From NCBI GenBank assembly GCA_001179505.1, contig CDMY01000550.1:1-53095 (forward strand): a stretch of 53,095 nt of DNA. The letters are read 5' to 3'. The stretch comes from Vitrella brassicaformis CCMP3155 (taxonomy: Eukaryota; Protista; Chromerida). Both the position numbers and the translations under genes were made by a program. A model generated the notes under the pieces. It was not told the origin of the DNA. It worked only from the letters and a program-made list of their open reading frames with translations, and did no database searches. Shown one piece after another: positions 30,676 to 39,688 of the stretch (its first letter is position 1; every line of letters starts with the position of its first letter).

Positions 30676-33600
30676 TCATTTGACCACCAGGTTGACAATC
30701 TTCTTTGGCACATAAATCTCCTTGACCACCCGCTGCCCCTGCTCCTCAACCCTCGCCAACACACCAGCCACCCTCGCGTCATCCCGCAGCAGTCGCAACA
30801 CGGCCTCCCTATCTCCCGCAATAGCCGCAGGCACCTCCAGCTGCCCCCTCAGCTTCCCGTTGACCTGCACCGGCACGGTGATCGAGTCCTCCACAAGCAG
30901 GTCTTCCCTGTAGGTCGGCCACTTGGCTGCAGTGCTGATGGAGTGCTGTGGGAGGGAGGGGTGGAGGACGGCCCACAGCTCTTCGCATACGTGGGGGGCG
31001 AAGGGGCTGAGCAGCAGCACCAGGGGGGTGGCGACTTCTCTCGGGAGGTCGGGCCACTTGTAGACGGCGTTGAGGAACTCCATCGAGGCCGAGATGGCGT
31101 TGTTGAACTTGAGTCCCTCGATGTCCTCCGTCACGCGCTTGATCAGCTTGTGCAGCGCCTTGAGCTCATCTCGTGTCGCCTCCCTCTCCGAGCAGCCACA
31201 CCCACCATCAGGAGAGACGATCTTCCGCCACAGCCGGTTGAGGAAGCGGTGGACGCCCTCCACGCCCTTGGTGCTCCATGGCTTGACGCTCTCCAGCGGG
31301 CCCATGAACATCAGATACAGCCGCAACGAGTCCGCCCCGGTGGCGGCGATGATGTCGTCAGGGTTGACGACATTGCCCCTGCTCTTGCTCATCTTCTCGC
31401 AGCGGGAGACCACCTCGATGGTCGGGTCGGCCTTGAGCACGAAGGCGTCACCCTTCTTGACCAGCTGCTCGTCGCCCACCCGCTCTGGCGTCAGCTCTTC
31501 TCCCGTTGAGGCGTCGGCTGGGGTGAGGCCGGACATGTCGACGTCTCTGGCAGTCGCATGTGCGCCGTCTTGCCTCCGGAAGACCGTGTGCTCCATCGGG
31601 CCGAGAATGAGCCCCTGGTTGACCAGCCGCTGGAAGGGCTCAGGTGTCGACACGACGCCCAGGTCGTAGAGGACCTTGTGCCAGAACCGGGAGTACAGCA
31701 GGTGCAGGACGGCGTGCTCCGTGCCGCCCACATACATGTCCACCGGCAGCCAGTACTTCTCCAGCTCGCCATCGATCGGCGCCTCCACGTTGCTCGGGTC
31801 CACAAAACGAAGATAGTACCAGCACGACCCCGCCCACTGCGGCATCGTGTTGGTCTCCCGCCGCACTGTCTGCCCGTCCACGGTCGTCGTGACCCAGTCG
31901 GTTGCCAGCGAGAGGGGGCCCTCGATTGACCCGCTCGGCTTGAAGGAGTCCATTTGCGGTAGAGTGATGGGCAGGTCAGTCTCCGGCACCGGCATGGCCT
32001 CGCCGGCGTCGTTGAATACGACAGGGAAGGGCTCGCCCCAGTACCGCTGACGGCTGAACAGCCAGTCCCTCAACGCGTAGTTGGTCTTCTTGCGGCCCCT
32101 GCCATTATCCTCCAGCCAGGCCGTGATCTTCTCTTTTGCGTCGGGGGCTGACATGCCGTTGAGTGAGACGAGGTCGCTCTCAGAGTTGACCACGACGGTG
32201 TCTGCCGTCTCGGTGAAGGCCTCTTGCTGGATGTCCCATGAGTCGTCTCCAGCAGCGGCGATCACCTGGACGATGGGCAGGTGGTACTTGAGGGCGAACT
32301 CATGGTCCCTGACGTCATGGCCCGGCACAGCCATGATGGCCCCGGTCCCATAGCCGCCCAGCACATAGTCCGCCACCCATATGGGCACCCGCTCCCCGCT
32401 AACAGGGTTGACGGCCAAGGCACCAGTGGGCACGCCAGTCTTGGACTTGGTCTCGGTGCGCTCCAGGTCGCTCTTGGACGCAGCGGCCTCGACGTATGCC
32501 GTGACGGCGGCTTCTTGGTCGGGTGTGGTGAGGCTGGCCACGAGTGGGTGCTCCGGTGCCAGTACGACATAGGTGCAGCCGAAGAGAGTGTCGGGGCGGG
32601 TGGTATACACACGAATGGCGGCGTCGGGCATGTCAGCCACCTGAACCACACACACACAGGGAGAGAGAGGGAGAATAGGACATTGCGTGAGCATCTCAGT
32701 GTAGGTCTGGGGGTCTGTGTGTGGGGCTGTGTGTGTGTGTGTGACCTGGAAGTCCACTTCCGCGCCTTCTGATTTGCCGATCCAGTTCCTCTGCATTTCC
32801 TTGACGTTGTCGGGCCAGTCGAGCATATCCAGGTCCTCCAGCAGGCGGTCCGCATAGGCAGTGATCTTGAGCATCCACTGCTTCATGGGCCGCCGGTAGA
32901 CGGGGAAGCCGCCCCTCTCCGACTTGCCGTCTATGACCTCCTCGTTGGCCAGCACGGTGCCCAGCTCGGGACACCAGTTGACGGGCACTTCCGCCTGGTA
33001 GGCCAGTCCTCTCTCGAAGAGCTTGAGGAAGATCCACTGCGTCCACTTGTAGTAGGCCGGATCGGTGGTCGACAGCTCCCTCTGCCAGTCGTAGGCGAAG
33101 CCCAGGCTCTTGAGCTGCTCCCTGAACCGGTCGACGTTCCGCTGCGTCGTGATGGCAGGGTGCGTCCCCGTCTGCACGGCGTACTGCTCCGCCGGCAGCC
33201 CAAAGGCGTCCCACCCCATCGGATGCAGCACGTTGAAGCCCCGCAGCCGCTTGTACCTCGCCAGGATGTCAGTGGCTGTGTATCCCTCAGGGTGTCCCAC
33301 GTGCAGGCCCGAGCCAGAGGGGTAGGGAAACATGTCAAGCACGTAGTACTTGGGGCGGCTGGTGTCGATGTCGGGCGGCGTGCGGAACGTCTGGTTAGCC
33401 TCCCAGAACTGCTGCCACTTCCTCTCTATCTCGGCATGAGGGTAAGCGGCCACGGCCGATGCGATAGAAGAAGAAGACGGCGACGATACTGCCTCGTCAT
33501 CGACTGATGCAGACGTAGCAGCTGCGGGCCGCTCTGCTTCGGCAACAGAAGCAGAAGAGCTCATCTGCAGCCTCAAGTGCCGCGTTGCTGGTGGCCGCCT

Positions 33601-33726
33601 GCTGTTGCTGGTGAGATCTGCTGCATGCGGGGCGAGGAAAGCCGCTTGCCGCCTGCGGATGTGGCCAGAAGTGCCTTGGACGATGGGCCACAGCAGCGAG
33701 AGGAAAGGTACCAACCTCATGATCAT
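30676..33726 (-). CDS. leuS: Bacterial-type (organellar) leucyl-tRNA synthetase with a bipartite plastid-like leader; one intron, 32641-32745
   Basis: [18 protein letters not shown] (HIGH motif), CP1 region TTRPDTLFG and [40 protein letters not shown] and [13 protein letters not shown]. The leader is [18 protein letters not shown] followed by an R/S/A-rich segment containing AAFLAP. Confidence 0.97.
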
Positions 33727-33844
33727 GCTGACGAATTCAAGAAGATCGTTGACCCGATAGCGTCTGTCCAAGGCAGCGGCAGCAGAAAGTCGCTCAAACG
33801 TCGCGGCGGCGGAGAGAGTGGTTCAGTGACAGCGGTTTCACGGC

Positions 33845-33854: not shown

Positions 33855-33971
33855 AGAACTGGTCTGAAGTGCGTGTTCTCCAAGATCTGCAGCTGCTGAG
33901 GACCAGCTGAGTCTGTGGATGGTGTTGGTGAAGAGTTGGTCCATTGAGATGCGTCCGTTGTGGTCTGAGCA

Positions 33972-36900
33972 ATGAGGAGACTTCGCCCACGGTCATGGGT
34001 GGCCGGCGGGGCTATCGCAGTTGCCCTGCTGGTGCAGATCTCGCTATCCTACCGCCTTGGCGACACCCACCTTCACCACGACGACCTGTGGCACGATGCA
34101 CACGAGGCAGCGGCCGGCGGACCTTCGCGGACCCTCCAGCCATCCGCAGACGGCCTGGAGGGCTCCCCAGTTGTCAGCGGTGCGCGAGATGCAGAGGGGG
34201 ATTGCGGCGGTGACTCCCCTGATGATGAGTGGGACAAGTGTCAGATGACCCGGCCCAGGAGGCCACGGAAGGTGTCGCTCAAGGGCATCTGGAACAGGGT
34301 GCTGAGCAAGGACAGCAAGGAGGAACAACAGCAGCAGAAGACGCGCAAGAAGGAGTGTGCAAGGGGCGCATCGGCGGCATGGAAGAAGTGCAAGGAGAGG
34401 AATGGGCAGCAAGGCGGCCTGCTATCCCGAATCAAGCGGTGGTTCAGCAACAGGTTCGGGGGCGCCTTTCCGTGGGTACGTGGCAAGGGTGAGGTGATAT
34501 CTATCAAGAGGAACGAGACGGAGAGGGCGGCTGCGGCTCCCCGCAGCGAGGCCGACATGGAGGCCTTCCGTCGGTACCGCAGCTGGATCTGGCTGGGGCT
34601 GGTCAGTGTGGTCATCCTCATCAGCCTGGCATTCGAACAGCTCAGGGAAATGATCCTACACACCCTCACGGAGAAGGGAGAAGAGGTGAGTGAGCACACA
34701 GACCACAGAGAGAGATAGGGGATAGAAGAAGGCAACGCACGTGTGTTGGGAGGGATTAATCTTGTCTGCCCGTCCTTTTGTCTGTCGGCTGCAGGACTAC
34801 AAGCGCGTCATCTCGCGTCTGTTCGAGGTGAGCATCGGCCGGCCACACACCCATCCCATGTGCAGGGCGCCGCGTCTCTTGGAATCGACCAATGCATGTG
34901 TGGTGTCTGCTTGTATGTGTTGCCCTTGCTTGCTCCGGTCCATCATACATATCAGGAGCTAACGACTTTGGGATTCATCGCCCTGTGTGTCTTCGCGCTG
35001 ATGCGGACGGGAACCTTCCACAGCCTCTCGCACTTTGTCTTCAGGTGCGAATCAGACAGACATCCCCCATCCCCCATCCACCACACACACGGTCGAACGA
35101 ACGCGTCACTGATTCTTGCAGGGACCACTTGGCGAGCATTGAGGGCGACGAGCACGGCGGTGAGGGTCATCCGCTGCTGGCTGAGATGTTTGAGGAGGTC
35201 CACATGCTGCTCTTCATCGCCATGGGGCTGCTCATTCTCATCGCCCTCTACTGCGTCACAATCGCTCACCACACCGCAGCCAAGTTCGCACACCAACACA
35301 CACACACACACACACAAGACAGCCGCACACACCCACCCCACATATCTGTGTGTGTGAAAAGGTGGCGAGAGGCGGAGCGCATGTCGCACGAGACTCTCCT
35401 GGAGATCCACGCCCACTACGCCACGAGGGGCGACCGGTTCTTCTGGTGGTGGCAGCTGCGCCGCGCCTTCGCACGACTGACCCACCAGCCTTTGCGTGCC
35501 GAGGGGCCGGTGGTGAGCCGCGACACTCTGCTGCGGTGGCTGGACTACCGCGCCATCCGCAGCGAGTTCGTCAAGCCGAGCGTGAGCAGCGTGCCGGGTG
35601 TGGACGCTGACCCGCTGTCCTTCCCTTTCTACAGCTACCTCAAGGCATGTATGGTGAGCGATATATATGGGTGGCGGAGAGAGGGAAGGAAGGGGGGGAG
35701 GGGTGCATTCGTGTGTTGCTTGGATGGATGTTAATGCAGGTTGATTTCGTAGTTGAGTTGCTGCACATCCCCAGCTGGATGTACTTTGTGATCCTCGTGG
35801 CCACACTGCCATTCAGATCGGCACTCTTCTGCCTGGTACGCGACGCCACAGCAAGACACTCCCACACAGACACAGACAAACACACAGCACGGTATACAGC
35901 CGTTTCCTGCTCTGTGTGTGTGTGTGCGTGTGTGCAGGAGGCGCGCCTGTTTGTGTTGGGCACTGTGGGTGTGCTGATCCCCACCGGCCTGGTGCTGCTG
36001 GCCTGCTACCTCAGATGGCTCAAACGAATGCTCACACCACCCGCCGAACGAATCCTCGTCTTCCAGGTCAGAGAAAAGACCACAAAGCAAAGCCCCCAAC
36101 CACACACAACCACCCCTCTCTCCCTCTCTCCATCTCTCCCTCCCTCTCCCTCTCTGCCTGTGTCTCTCCTCAGCAAACAGAGCTCGACCGCAAGAACCAC
36201 CGCCGCGGCGACTTCGGCGGCCGCAAGTCGGTGACCTCTCTTGCCGGCATCCCGCCCTTCATGCTGCAGTGGGCCACAAACTCGACCCACTCCGAGGGCG
36301 GCACACCATCGGACCACTCACAGAGAAACGGCGACGGCGGGGTCTTCCCATCCACCCCCACCTCCAGCGGCGACCGGGGCGCGGGCACCACCACACACGG
36401 CAGCGCACGAGGGGCGGCCTCCTCTCTCTCCCGAGGCATCACGCAGGACTGGGCCGTCGGGTCGTCCGAGTGCTTCCTGGCGCCGTTCCACACGCTTGAC
36501 CCGGTGCACGCGACGTCGCCTCTGCTGATAGCGTTCGGGGGGACGGCGACGCCCAACCGGCACCAGCAGCTGTTCATCGGATGGAAGAACGGCCCCAAGA
36601 TCTTGAAGAGCTGCATACAGCTGCTGGTGATTGCGCTGGCCGTCTACACGGCCATTATGATGGGGCAGGTCACCGACAATGCGGGCGTCTTCACTGGCTC
36701 CTGGTACGTTTGTGTTGGCACGGTCGATGCGCGCCGCAACACGCCCGCCCCCATGCTGTGTGTGGGGTGTGGGGTGTTGGGTTTGCTGACCAGGCTTGTG
36801 TTCTGGGTGGTGGTGCTGAGCACCATAGTGAGTCTGCTGTTCCTGATCCCGGGCATCATCGCCGACGTGACGGTGGTGTGCAGCATCGAGCTCATGAAGA

Positions 36901-38628
36901 ACCAGCACCACGTCATCCGCACGTGCGAGCTCGTCAGGCACGCGCAGTACCTCAAGAGGTTCAAACTCCTCTCACAGCTCAAGAAATTCTCGAAGCTGCA
37001 ACGGTGCGTGAGAGGAAATTGTGCCACCGGCTGGTGCATTCGTGTGTGTGTGTGTGTGTGTGTGTGTGTCCAGGTACACCCACCTGGCCGACAAGCATCG
37101 TGACGTCCTGCGGAAGGAGGTCAGTGAATAAAGAGACAGACGGGGAGACGCGCATTCGAATGAGCGTGTGGGGTGTGTGTGTGTTGGTGTGTGTGTGTGT
37201 GGTCGTGTCAGATGGCGTCCCGTTGGCGCGCTTTGAAGGACGTTGAGAAGCGGATGATCACTGCCAGCTTCATTGCCGCCGACAGGGGCTGCAAAATGTA
37301 GACGTCAAGAACCAACAAGAGCGCATATCTATGCTAATGGTTCGTTGGCTCACAAGTTGTTGGAACTGATTTGATTGCAGGCATCTGACGGCCAGCGAGG
37401 CGGAGCGTGCTCTGCAGATGAGCGGCATCGACATGACAGACCAGGAAGTCAAGAAATGGTCGGTCTCCGCTCACAGACATGGGGAGCTGCTCGTGGGTGT
37501 AAATGTGCCTCTGCGTCTGTCCTTTGCGTTGTGTGCAGGTTTGAAGTGTTTGATTTCCACAACCGGGGTCACCTCGACATGGACAGCTTCAGAATGATGA
37601 TGCTCGCTATCAACGCCACTCTGGTAAGCAACGCCCCACCACACCCCACATCAATGCGCCGTCTCCGTTCCACTGCCCCTTTGGTGTGCACACGTGCATC
37701 TGTCTGTCGATCAGTTCGGCAGCCGTTTGACCGAGGACGAGTTGGTGGAGCTCATCAGCATCATCGCCGGCGAGGAGACCCCCCAGTCGCCCCTCGACGC
37801 CCCGCCACCCCTCGCACACAGCACCAGCCAGCCCGTCTCCACCCACCAACCCCACCCTCTCACTCGCTCCCTCTCGCGCGAGTCGGCCCCCTCCCAGATG
37901 CACCTATGGCTCAACCACCAGCAGAAGATCGGACAGCTGAACCGCTCCGAGTCGCCCAACCCCGCACAGACCTCCACCCGAGCCCCCAGCTACACTGGCA
38001 GTGGTGACGGGGGCGGCACATCCCCAGCCCTCTCCTCCCAGACGGTCCCTGCGCGCCAGCCGCCACCCCTGGCCACCGGACACATCGGCGGCCACAGCTT
38101 CACCATCAGGCCGACCCTCTCGCTCAGCCGCTCACGCACAGAGAAGAACATCGCTGCCCAGCAACAGCAGCAGCAGCAGCAGCATGGGCCGACGGTCAAC
38201 GGTGGTCATGGTCACGGTGCGCCGGTGCCGATGCCCTCTCCCCGTCGGTCGAGCAGCCCCGGGGGACAGACGCCGAGGCATGGCGGGGCGGACGTGAGGA
38301 GGGGTTCGGCGCCACATGCGCTGACCCACAGTGGGGTGCAGCTGGTGACGCCCGATGATTTGCAGAAGCTGCTGTCCAACACTGTCTCCAGGTGCGACCG
38401 ACAGAGGGGCGGAGAGAGAGAACGCAGGACGGGAAAATTGTTTGCCTTGTGCCTCTCTCCCCCTCCCCCTCCCCCTCCCCCTCCCTCTGCCTGCCTCCGT
38501 GTGTGTGTAGGAGCGAATGTGTGAGCCTGATATCGACGATGAACTCGGGTGCGCCTCGGTCTTACGCCACAGCGGAGGAGTTCTCCAAGTGGGTCAGGAG
38601 GGTGGAGGCCGACGTGGACCTGCTGTAA
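33972..38628 (+). CDS. MLO-like multipass membrane protein with a C-terminal calmodulin-like (degenerate EF-hand) region
   Basis: MLO-like segments: LVSVVILISLAFEQL...ISRLFEELTTLGFIALCVF, FEEVHMLLFIAM...AAKWREAE, SFPFYSYLKACMVDFVVELLHIPSWMYF and LFIGWKNGPKIL. The tail has SFIAADRGCKMHLTASEAERAL, MSGIDMTDQEVKKWFEVFDFHNRGHLDMDSF and FGSRLTEDELVELIS. Confidence 0.72.
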
Positions 38629-39688
38629 AGCATGAGGATCGAAGGCAGACGGTCTGCCCTCACTGCAAGGAAGGGAGGAAGGCGTGTTGCTTATATATGG
38701 CGCTCGTAAAGATTTTTGCAATGACGAGCTTTATAATTTTTCGCCACCACCCATCCATACACACCCACTCACTCACTCACTGACTCAGCGATGCACATGA
38801 ATGACTAAGGCAGGCATCAACACGCGCCGGTACTGATAGAGGGAGGGAGAAGGGTCCCACATGCAATGCATAATGTGTGTGTGTGCGTGTGTGTTGTGGC
38901 TGGGCTGAGACGATGGATGGATGGATGGATCCACACACCACTGACCTCCCTCCTACACGAGAGTGCCCGTAGTGAGTGAATGTGGATGAGTGATGGACTG
39001 GATGGTGGCGACCGCAGCATTTTTCCCTGCCTGCCTGCCTGGATGCCTGGATGCCTGGATGCTTGCGCGAGGGAATGGCAACCTGCGCTGACTGACAGGG
39101 ACATACAGACATATACACACCGACACCCATACATACGAACGTACAAGAGTTTTATGTGCGTGGCATGGTTGGGAAGCGATATGATTGGTTTGGGAGAGAG
39201 GAAGGGAGGGAGAGAGGGAGGGGGAGCTGAGCCGATGGATCGAGGGGGTCTTTCAAGGCATCAAGACACTCTGGGCGGGTGGTTGGGTGAGGTGGTAAGG
39301 TGAGTGCTACGTACCTGCATGTACTGTAAGCTGAGCTGTCGTGTGCCTGCCTGCCTGCCTGCGTAGACCATCTATATTTATGTTGCTGCTGGGGCGGATA
39401 GGATGTATGCGTCCATGTACCTCATTACCTTACCTTACCTTACACGCGCGCTTTATCTAGTGAGTGAGTGAGTGGTGAGTCCATGTGGGTGGGATGCATT
39501 CATTCATGTGACCGACCGTGAGTGGGCCAGAGAGAGCCGCCACAGGCTCATCCTTGCCTGCCTGCCTGCCTGCCTGCCTCCTCCTTCGCGTCAAGACATT
39601 GCCTTCCATGAGGCCTAAAGAATAAAGGAAGACATTACAGCAGTGTACATTCTCACACGCAAGTAAACCAGTGCAGGAAAGGTCGCTC

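Follow-up and report, generated by a model that had tools for sequence, protein, structure and literature searches.

A single expressed gene of the chromerid Vitrella brassicaformis joins a putatively MLO-like membrane core to a calmodulin-like tail with non-canonical EF-hand loops

The window analyzed here is a stretch of 53,095 nucleotides from the alveolate (chromerid) Vitrella brassicaformis CCMP3155 (contig CDMY01000550.1, positions 1 to 53,095, assembly GCA_001179505.1). The region 33972-38628 on the plus strand is GC-rich and appears as a chain of open pieces with alternating frames. It is one expressed gene, with the ATG at 33972 and the stop codon ending at 38628, and it comprises 15 exons and 1114 codons. 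The encoded protein joins a transmembrane (TM) part to an EF-hand part, and it is probably composed of a seven-helix core remotely related to plant MLO proteins and a tethered calmodulin-like module. A preliminary description of this locus had proposed an MLO-family membrane protein carrying its own calmodulin-like tail in an alveolate. The strings quoted there are all present at exact coordinates, and the union of the TM core and the EF-like tail in one gene is confirmed, since spliced contigs and two database proteins span both parts.

All 14 introns are of the GT-AG type, and the reading frame is continuous with compatible phases in the exon model, which was built by hand from the sequence. 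The initial model had 14 exons and 3435 nt, and the count rose to 15 after contigs gave evidence of an intron at 36704-36793. The splicing evidence consists of assembled contigs of public runs, not reads, compared with 33900-38700, and it concerns the existence of the spliced form and not its abundance. Run X7 includes one spliced contig of 4375 nt, which extends from 33900, upstream of the ATG, to past 38700; eight junctions are listed directly in it, and the other exons are covered by length. A spliced contig of 1965 nt from run X1 extends from 36590 to beyond the stop codon and connects TM6 with the stop. In these two runs, membrane and EF parts share the same spliced contigs, while run X6 shows the unspliced DNA form. 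The exon check against transcripts suggested in the preliminary description was thus positive at eight junctions and revealed one extra intron. The X7 contig runs ~880 nt past 38700, which indicates either a 3′ untranslated region near 1 kb or an overlap with a neighboring transcript.

The intron 36704-36793 is 90 nt long, in frame, and without a stop codon, so it is not visible by reading of open reading frames (ORFs). Only its spliced form was seen, in contigs of the two runs X1 and X7, and the intron sequence is also missing from the database proteins P0001 and P0012. If this intron were retained, the protein would be longer by 30 residues (YVCVGTVDARRNTPAPMLCVGCGVLGLLTR) between TM6 and TM7. 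CA/GT dinucleotide runs or CT/CCCT-rich runs are observed in most introns (35285-35325, 35905-35940, 36118-36167, 37040-37070, 37165-37205, and 38455-38510).

A search of 1.84 billion representative proteins with exon 8 gave 11 matches at E ≤ 0.001. The first of them, designated P0001, is 100% identical; it is an 861-aa ORF derived from the Joint Genome Institute (JGI), which starts in exon 3 and ends at the stop codon of the gene. The same cluster includes P0012 (CEM22082.1/UniRef100_A0A0G4G1Z4), a 1114-aa protein of V. brassicaformis CCMP3155 whose public names are only "unnamed protein product" and "EF-hand domain-containing protein". Exons were searched singly, whereas full-length analyses were run on the entries P0001 and P0012 after an exon-by-exon check, in which 15 of the 15 exon translations were found at the expected residue numbers in P0012. 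Residue numbers below refer to P0012.

Seven TM helices were recognized by hydropathy and in an AlphaFold2 model. Exon 1 (33972-34685, residues 1-238), supported by the X7 contig in which 33900-34683 is joined to 34793, encodes a basic start, a signal-peptide-like hydrophobic segment at residues 8-26, a basic, presumably luminal or extracellular region of ~180 residues, and TM1 (206-224), which contains VILISLAFE. The relatives P0006 and P0008 likewise begin with a hydrophobic segment. Residues 27-204 are rich in Arg and Lys with a net charge of +9, and they include 5 His, all within 33-45. Of the signal anchor with a His-rich ectodomain suggested earlier, the N-terminal signal-peptide-like segment stands, but the histidines form a small cluster and not a His-rich domain. 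Exon 2 (34795-34827, residues 239-249, DYKRVISRLFE; X7 joints 34683>34793 and 34825>34954) corresponds to cytosolic loop 1. Exon 3 (34956-35044, residues 250-279), supported by the start of P0001, contigs, and the mapping to P0012, encodes TM2 (ELTTLGFIALCVFAL), and the motif EELTTLGFIAL (249-260) lies across the exon 2/3 joint.

Both exon 4 (35122-35283, residues 279-333) and exon 5 (35362-35653, residues 333-430) are supported by contigs, from X1 and X7 in the case of exon 5, and by P0012. The former encodes extracellular loop 1, which is acidic with His and free of cysteines, and TM3 (VHMLLFIAMG...); the latter encodes KWREAE, cytosolic loop 2, and FPFYSYL (420-426). The composite motif VHMLLF...KWREAE occupies residues 305-338. 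TM4 is encoded by exon 6 (35740-35835, residues 431-462; joint 35652>35739 in X1 and X7), and TM5 with the family motif MLTPP by exon 7 (35938-36066, residues 463-505; contigs, P0012, and the family alignment). Exon 8 (36174-36703, residues 506-682), which is matched by homologs, encodes cytosolic loop 3 (~506-640), the motif GTATPNRHQQLFIGWKNGP, and TM6. Loop 3 is rich in Gly, Ser, and Thr and is modeled as disordered, with a predicted local distance difference test score (pLDDT) <50 at model residues 329-410. Downstream of the intron skipped in the X1 and X7 contigs, exon 9 (36794-37003, residues 682-752) encodes TM7, IELMK, and most of a basic juxtamembrane stretch (734-753, encoded by 36948-37003 and the next exon), which belongs to a long helix continuing from TM7 (pLDDT 67-95). 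Exon 10 (37074-37119, residues 752-767) is supported by the length of the X7 contig between flanking pieces and by P0012. The signal-peptide-like segment, the basic character of the cytosolic loops, and the acidity of loop 1 make it likely that the N-terminus is outside and the C-terminus inside, as in MLO.

The tail is encoded by the last five exons. Exon 11 (37212-37297, residues 768-796; joint 37297>37381) encodes MASRWRAL (768-775), the E-helix of EF1, and the first half of the EF1 loop. Exon 12 (37381-37458, residues 796-822; contigs, P0012, and the alignment) encodes the remainder of this loop (DRGCKMHLTASE, 791-802) and the F-helix. Exon 13 (37539-37623, residues 822-850) encodes EF2, with the loop DFHNRGHLDMDS (827-838) at 37552-37587, and it gave a Pfam EF-hand_6 match of 16.2 bits (E 0.0087). 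Exon 14 (37715-38391, residues 851-1076) encodes the E-helix of EF3 (EDELVELISII, 857-867), an insert of ~190 aa in the EF3 loop (37766-38341), and the F-helix (LVTPDDLQKLL, 1060-1070), as seen from the alignment and from a pLDDT <50 over model residues 147-348 with brief interruptions. Exon 15 (38511-38628, residues 1076-1114 and the stop codon) encodes EF4, with the loop NSGAPRSYATAE at 38542-38577 and the F-helix EFSKWVRRVE within and downstream of ATAEEFSKWV (1095-1104), and shows 50% identity to the C-terminus of the relative P0002.

The similarity of the core to MLO proteins was indicated through several routes. For residues 196-270, which include TM1 and TM2, Mlo was the top Pfam family with 17.3 bits (E 0.0017; positions 10-67 of the hidden Markov model (HMM) on residues 205-262), below the curated gathering cut-off of 24 bits for Pfam Mlo (PF03094). 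Relatives with the same whole layout also show sub-threshold Mlo matches: P0013 at HMM positions 9-69 (20.3 bits), P0009 at 7-70 (12.9 bits), P0002 at 127-186 (19.6 bits), and P0014 at 340-399 (12 bits). These HMM segments are colinear with the family alignment. In a six-frame search of the Vitrella assembly, the sole locus above the Mlo cut-off was a paralog on contig C404 (26.5-27.3 bits), and its exon is 43% identical to TM1-TM2 of P0012 (E 8e-10). When residues 1-498 of P0001 were used in a protein-language-feature search, the Mlo family was present in 66 of the 100 nearest clusters, and the best score was 0.91 with 197/256 features shared. With exon 5 alone as the query, the ESM Atlas feature search gave no informative match (scores ≤0.82), and the word-index protein search with exon 8, P0001 residues 1-520, or the family alignment returned nothing or the query alone.

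The AlphaFold2 model of residues 195-767 (10-row alignment) has a mean pLDDT of 71.8 and a predicted template modeling score (pTM) of 0.68. When it was compared with ESM Atlas, one oomycete cluster that bears Mlo was matched with template modeling scores of 0.61/0.63 over 408 residues, while all other rows were ≤0.23. Against PDB, Foldseek and a wider structure search recovered only generic helical bundles (Z ≤ 9.2), and no solved MLO structure turned up. The lack of PDB matches beyond helical bundles fits a family without an experimental structure. As regards the modeling of the MLO fold proposed in the preliminary description, the only match was to predicted structures, those of the Mlo-bearing oomycete cluster. 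Following the usage of Kusch et al. (2016), the core is designated as MLO-like and not as canonical MLO, because its Pfam scores are below the cut-off and the plant cysteines are absent. Sequence comparisons and predicted structures support the view that the TM core is remotely related to plant MLO and belongs to a small family of proteins with a TM core and an EF tail. Accordingly, the earlier assignment to the MLO family is retained as MLO-like, by predicted fold and transitive sequence links, and its canonical form is dropped.

The calmodulin-like nature of the tail, also proposed earlier, was confirmed at the levels of sequence and predicted structure. Residues ~763-853 matched calmodulin and troponin C among PDB chains with a best e-value of 3e-4. 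In the model of residues 725-1114, the first EF pair (model residues 39-129) has pLDDT >90 and shows a normal pair geometry with a short beta bridge. The modeled N-lobe (763-853) superposes on calmodulin, troponin C, and centrin with Z 10-12.2, a root-mean-square deviation (rmsd) of 1.2-2.4 Å, and 16-20% identity; the matches include the calmodulin N-lobe 3uct_B (72/72 residues) and the centrin N-domain 5z1q_A (75/75). The Foldseek list for the tail model consists of EF-hand proteins only. The HMM check was negative, as the Pfam EF-hand models stay below their gathering cut-offs, with 22.9-23.5 bits for EF-hand_7 (E 7e-5 to 1e-4, cut-off 30) and 16-16.9 bits for EF-hand_6 (cut-off 25).

When the tail was aligned with those of relatives, each family member showed four EF units. 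In Vitrella, the loops of EF1, EF2, and EF4 are continuous, while EF3 is split, with its E-helix and F-helix separated by ~190 disordered residues. The insert is therefore located inside the third EF loop and not between units. This agrees with the earlier observation of a tail split by a Ser/Pro/Gln-rich insert: the insert occupies ~868-1059, and the composition over 864-1060 is 13.7% S, 13.2% P, 10.7% G, and 10.2% Q. The absence of canonical ligands noted earlier is also upheld. With an EF loop pattern after PROSITE PS00018 (oxygen ligands at loop positions 1, 3, 5, and 12 with Gly at position 6), zero canonical loops were found in P0012 and P0002, even when the pattern was relaxed, and one or two in the other relatives. 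Canonical, Pfam-positive EF units are present in P0009, P0013, P0014, and P0008, at unit 1, unit 3, or both.

P0002 (2017 aa), a UniParc entry which may come from the other chromerid, is the closest relative, with 41% identity and the same tail arrangement. It contains an insert of ~1,050 aa (residues ~890-1940), which interrupts the third EF loop where the insert of the Vitrella protein does. Loops 2 and 3 of P0002 are also much longer, and its inserts are low-complexity sequences rich in Ser, Pro, Gly, and Ala. The tails of P0012 and P0002 are 36% identical before the insert (E 4e-27) and 50% identical after it (E 9e-18), and the conserved parts are the helices beside the loops and the last 48 residues. 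This conservation argues against simple decay of the tail.

The Vitrella genome contains further copies. A core profile search found six further loci: C404:13371-13969, C468:17279-17473, C405:376738-380277, C384:18696-19100, C384:67519-67907, and C176:170088-171226. The copies on C404 and C468 are nearly identical over the stretches seen. At five of the six fetched loci, a loop-pattern scan recognized canonical EF loops on the same strand at a distance of 2-4 kb downstream, as candidate exons of the same genes. A search of the genome with the tail profile found only the locus of the gene analyzed here and no paralog tails. The preliminary description had suggested that the tail may be a Ca2+-insensitive lock; this suggestion gains comparative support, since both the relatives and the Vitrella paralog loci keep canonical loops.

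Based on these results, the protein is interpreted as an MLO-like seven-TM core with a tethered calmodulin-like module, in which canonical Ca2+ sensing has probably been lost and which would then act as a Ca2+-independent subunit; the probability of this interpretation is estimated at roughly 0.7. By analogy with MLO proteins, the core may mediate or organize Ca2+ flux across the membrane. The tethered module would replace the separate calmodulin to which the tails of plant MLO proteins bind in trans. In the chromerid lineage, it would probably be without canonical Ca2+ sensing and could serve as a structural or gating subunit that is constitutive and needs no Ca2+, much like apo-calmodulin or a myosin light chain. 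The inserts rich in Ser, Thr, and Pro may be flexible regulatory regions.

Several points weigh against this interpretation. In the Pfam Mlo test proposed earlier, the match to P0012 remained below the cut-off not only for TM1-TM2 but also for the whole protein (9.4 bits, E 0.4) and for residues 180-760 (12.1 bits). Pfam searches with the raw ORF pieces and the exact exons gave no Mlo match and only a weak EF-hand_6 match, and the six-frame Mlo search of the whole assembly gave no signal at the gene's own locus. No Cys is present in extracellular loop 1 (266-304) or loop 3 (669-682), and thus the plant MLO cysteines are absent. The WxxWE motif of MLO is WxxAE here (WREAE). In the matching oomycete Atlas cluster, a Pfam Mlo domain is present in only 29% of the members, and both sides of that match are predictions; the alignments behind the structure models are shallow, with 7-10 sequences. 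The stretch at 734-753, which begins with YLKRFKLLSQLKKFSKL (734-750), had been described as basic and amphipathic. It is basic, with a charge of +6 to +7, but not amphipathic, because its helical hydrophobic moment of 0.05-0.18 is no higher than that of 76-97% of shuffles. Downstream of it, an aromatic residue is conserved (W772 in SRWRAL), and the basic helix has no alignment to the plant calmodulin-binding domain, in which Leu and Trp are conserved. Complex prediction gave no support to a tail docked on the juxtamembrane helix: the N-lobe (768-872) with the helix 720-767 scored 0.00 in a run without controls, a score that speaks neither for nor against docking. Finally, for the family with a TM core and an EF tail, Ca2+ transport by the core and Ca2+ binding by the tail are predictions made by analogy.

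A more far-reaching version can be proposed tentatively. In this version, the tail would be a chromerid pseudo-calmodulin, that is, a tethered four-EF module without any Ca2+ binding, with the third loop as the entry point of inserts. Such a module would be a subunit permanently engaged in gating or assembly, control would have passed from Ca2+ to modifications of the insert rich in Ser, Thr, and Pro, and the sister paralogs in the same genome would still sense Ca2+.

An EF loop can bind Ca2+ or Mg2+ even when it is non-canonical, which also counts against a Ca2+-independent subunit. It is conceivable, although rather doubtful, that the tail is a working Ca2+ or Mg2+ sensor with non-canonical ligands and that the protein is a self-sensing channel, as the relatives with canonical loops probably are. 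The putative ligands would be D791 and E802 in EF1, N1087 and E1098 in EF4, and D1065 at loop position 12 of the EF3 remnant. In favor of a sensor, loop position 12 is still the bidentate Glu in both EF1 and EF4, and position 1 is Asp or Asn. The N-lobe is modeled with the normal geometry of an EF pair and a short beta bridge and superposes on Ca2+-bound lobes as well as on apo lobes, and conservation of the tail extends to P0002. However, positions 3/5 are G/K in EF1, H/R in EF2, and G/P in EF4, position 12 of EF2 is Ser, and EF3 is interrupted by ~190 aa. No loop passes the relaxed EF pattern, while loops of the relatives pass it.

It is improbable that the seven-helix core is not homologous to MLO and represents an independent protist membrane family, with MLO-like motifs acquired by chance or convergence. 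The sub-threshold Pfam scores of P0012 and most relatives, the missing cysteines, and a sole structural match to a cluster in which 71% of the members are without Pfam Mlo would be expected in such a case. On the other hand, the sub-threshold matches of the relatives fall on three HMM segments in colinear order, and the exon of the C404 paralog exceeds the Mlo cut-off. The feature search and the shape search both selected Mlo-bearing clusters and nothing else, and no other PDB fold was indicated.

It is slightly less probable still that the degenerate tail is a decaying relic without a regulatory role and that the protein works as a bare MLO-like core. The loss of ligands in all four loops and the large low-complexity inserts in the tail and loop 3 are compatible with a relic. 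However, P0012 and P0002, whose inserts differ greatly in length, share conserved helices beside the loops and a conserved stretch of the last 48 residues, and the entire tail is within the spliced transcript, with the N-lobe modeled at pLDDT >90. A merger of two neighboring genes, for which nothing speaks beyond the general risk that gene models become fused in a genome rich in introns, is contradicted by the single spliced contigs in two runs, and moreover the independent JGI-derived ORF P0001 covers both parts and relatives have both parts in uninterrupted ORFs on 2.2-2.4-kb contigs.

A leucyl-tRNA synthetase gene is located at 30676-33771 on the minus strand, head to head with the MLO-like gene, and the two starts are only ~200 bp apart. 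Its long ORF seems to include an in-frame intron, recognized as a His/Thr/Pro/Cys-rich stretch near CVCVVQ, and it starts with a hydrophobic leader which could be an organelle-targeting signal.

Recognition of the core, which Pfam leaves unlabeled, as MLO-like improves the annotation of this Vitrella gene and of its paralogs, at least five to six loci. The contrast within one genome between a degenerate, insert-split tail and copies with canonical loops could be used to test whether tethered Ca2+ sensing is needed in MLO-type function. Chromerids are free-living relatives of apicomplexan parasites. The Ca2+ entry routes in these parasites are poorly defined. A tractable MLO-like family in chromerids is of some interest. 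Transfection of Chromera has been reported (PMC12407925).

Several known systems resemble the protein in part. The tail is similar to calmodulin, troponin C, and centrin in the superposition of its N-lobe and in having four EF units overall, but it differs in that it contains no canonical 12-residue site, its EF3 is split by ~190 aa, and its EF-hand_7 score is below the cut-off. The calcium-dependent protein kinases (CDPKs) of plants and alveolates follow the same design, in which an effector is succeeded by a long helix and then by a four-EF-hand domain in cis; in CDPKs, this calmodulin-like domain regulates the helix in front of it. The first Foldseek row for the tail model was the calcium-binding domain of Cryptosporidium CDPK3 (3l19), a weak match (E 1.6e-3, rmsd 10.6 Å) informative on topology only. 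In Vitrella, the effector is a membrane core and not a kinase, and the EF loops are degenerate, whereas those of CDPKs bind Ca2+.

Plant MLO proteins are reported to mediate Ca2+ influx and to bind calmodulin at the proximal C-terminal tail. The Vitrella protein shares with barley Mlo and Arabidopsis MLO2 the seven TM helices, the probable orientation with the N-terminus outside and the C-terminus inside, large cytosolic loops 2 and 3, and the helix continuing from TM7. The motifs LISxxxE, ELxxLGFIxL, and HxLxF...W..xE in TM1-TM2/TM3 and a link to calmodulin-type proteins are also common to both. It differs from them in its sub-threshold Pfam scores, in the calmodulin-like module, which is in the same chain and not a separate protein, in the presence of a signal peptide, and in lacking an alignable calmodulin-binding domain and the conserved extracellular cysteines of loops 1 and 3, which are listed as C83, C96, C129/139, and C386 by Kusch et al. 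(PMC4824068). According to the same paper, the similarity of non-plant MLO-like proteins to plant MLO is mainly in TM1-TM3, their cysteines are mostly absent, and their tail is unlike the plant calmodulin-binding domain (PMC4824068).

Fusions of an MLO-like protein with C-terminal EF-hands have been reported in that study for Alveolata, Stramenopiles, Chlorophyta, and Apusozoa (PMC4824068), which bears out the statement in the preliminary description that MLO-like genes with EF-hands are known outside plants. Vitrella is not named in its main text (PMC4824068). These fusions consist of an MLO-like polytopic core and a C-terminal EF-hand-rich domain in one ORF, and the Vitrella gene falls within this definition, with one transcript and ORF, TM1-TM2 similarity, and an EF domain. 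It differs from them in that all four loops are non-canonical and the third contains a disordered insert, and in its signal peptide and N-terminal region of ~180 aa. The concept of the MLO-EF-hand fusion is not new, the novelty is lower than implied earlier, and the degenerate, insert-split tail is a modest variation of it. Kusch et al. discuss the fusions as a "proof of concept" Rosetta stone (PMC4824068), and the Vitrella fusion is likewise a natural Rosetta stone for the partnership of MLO and calmodulin.

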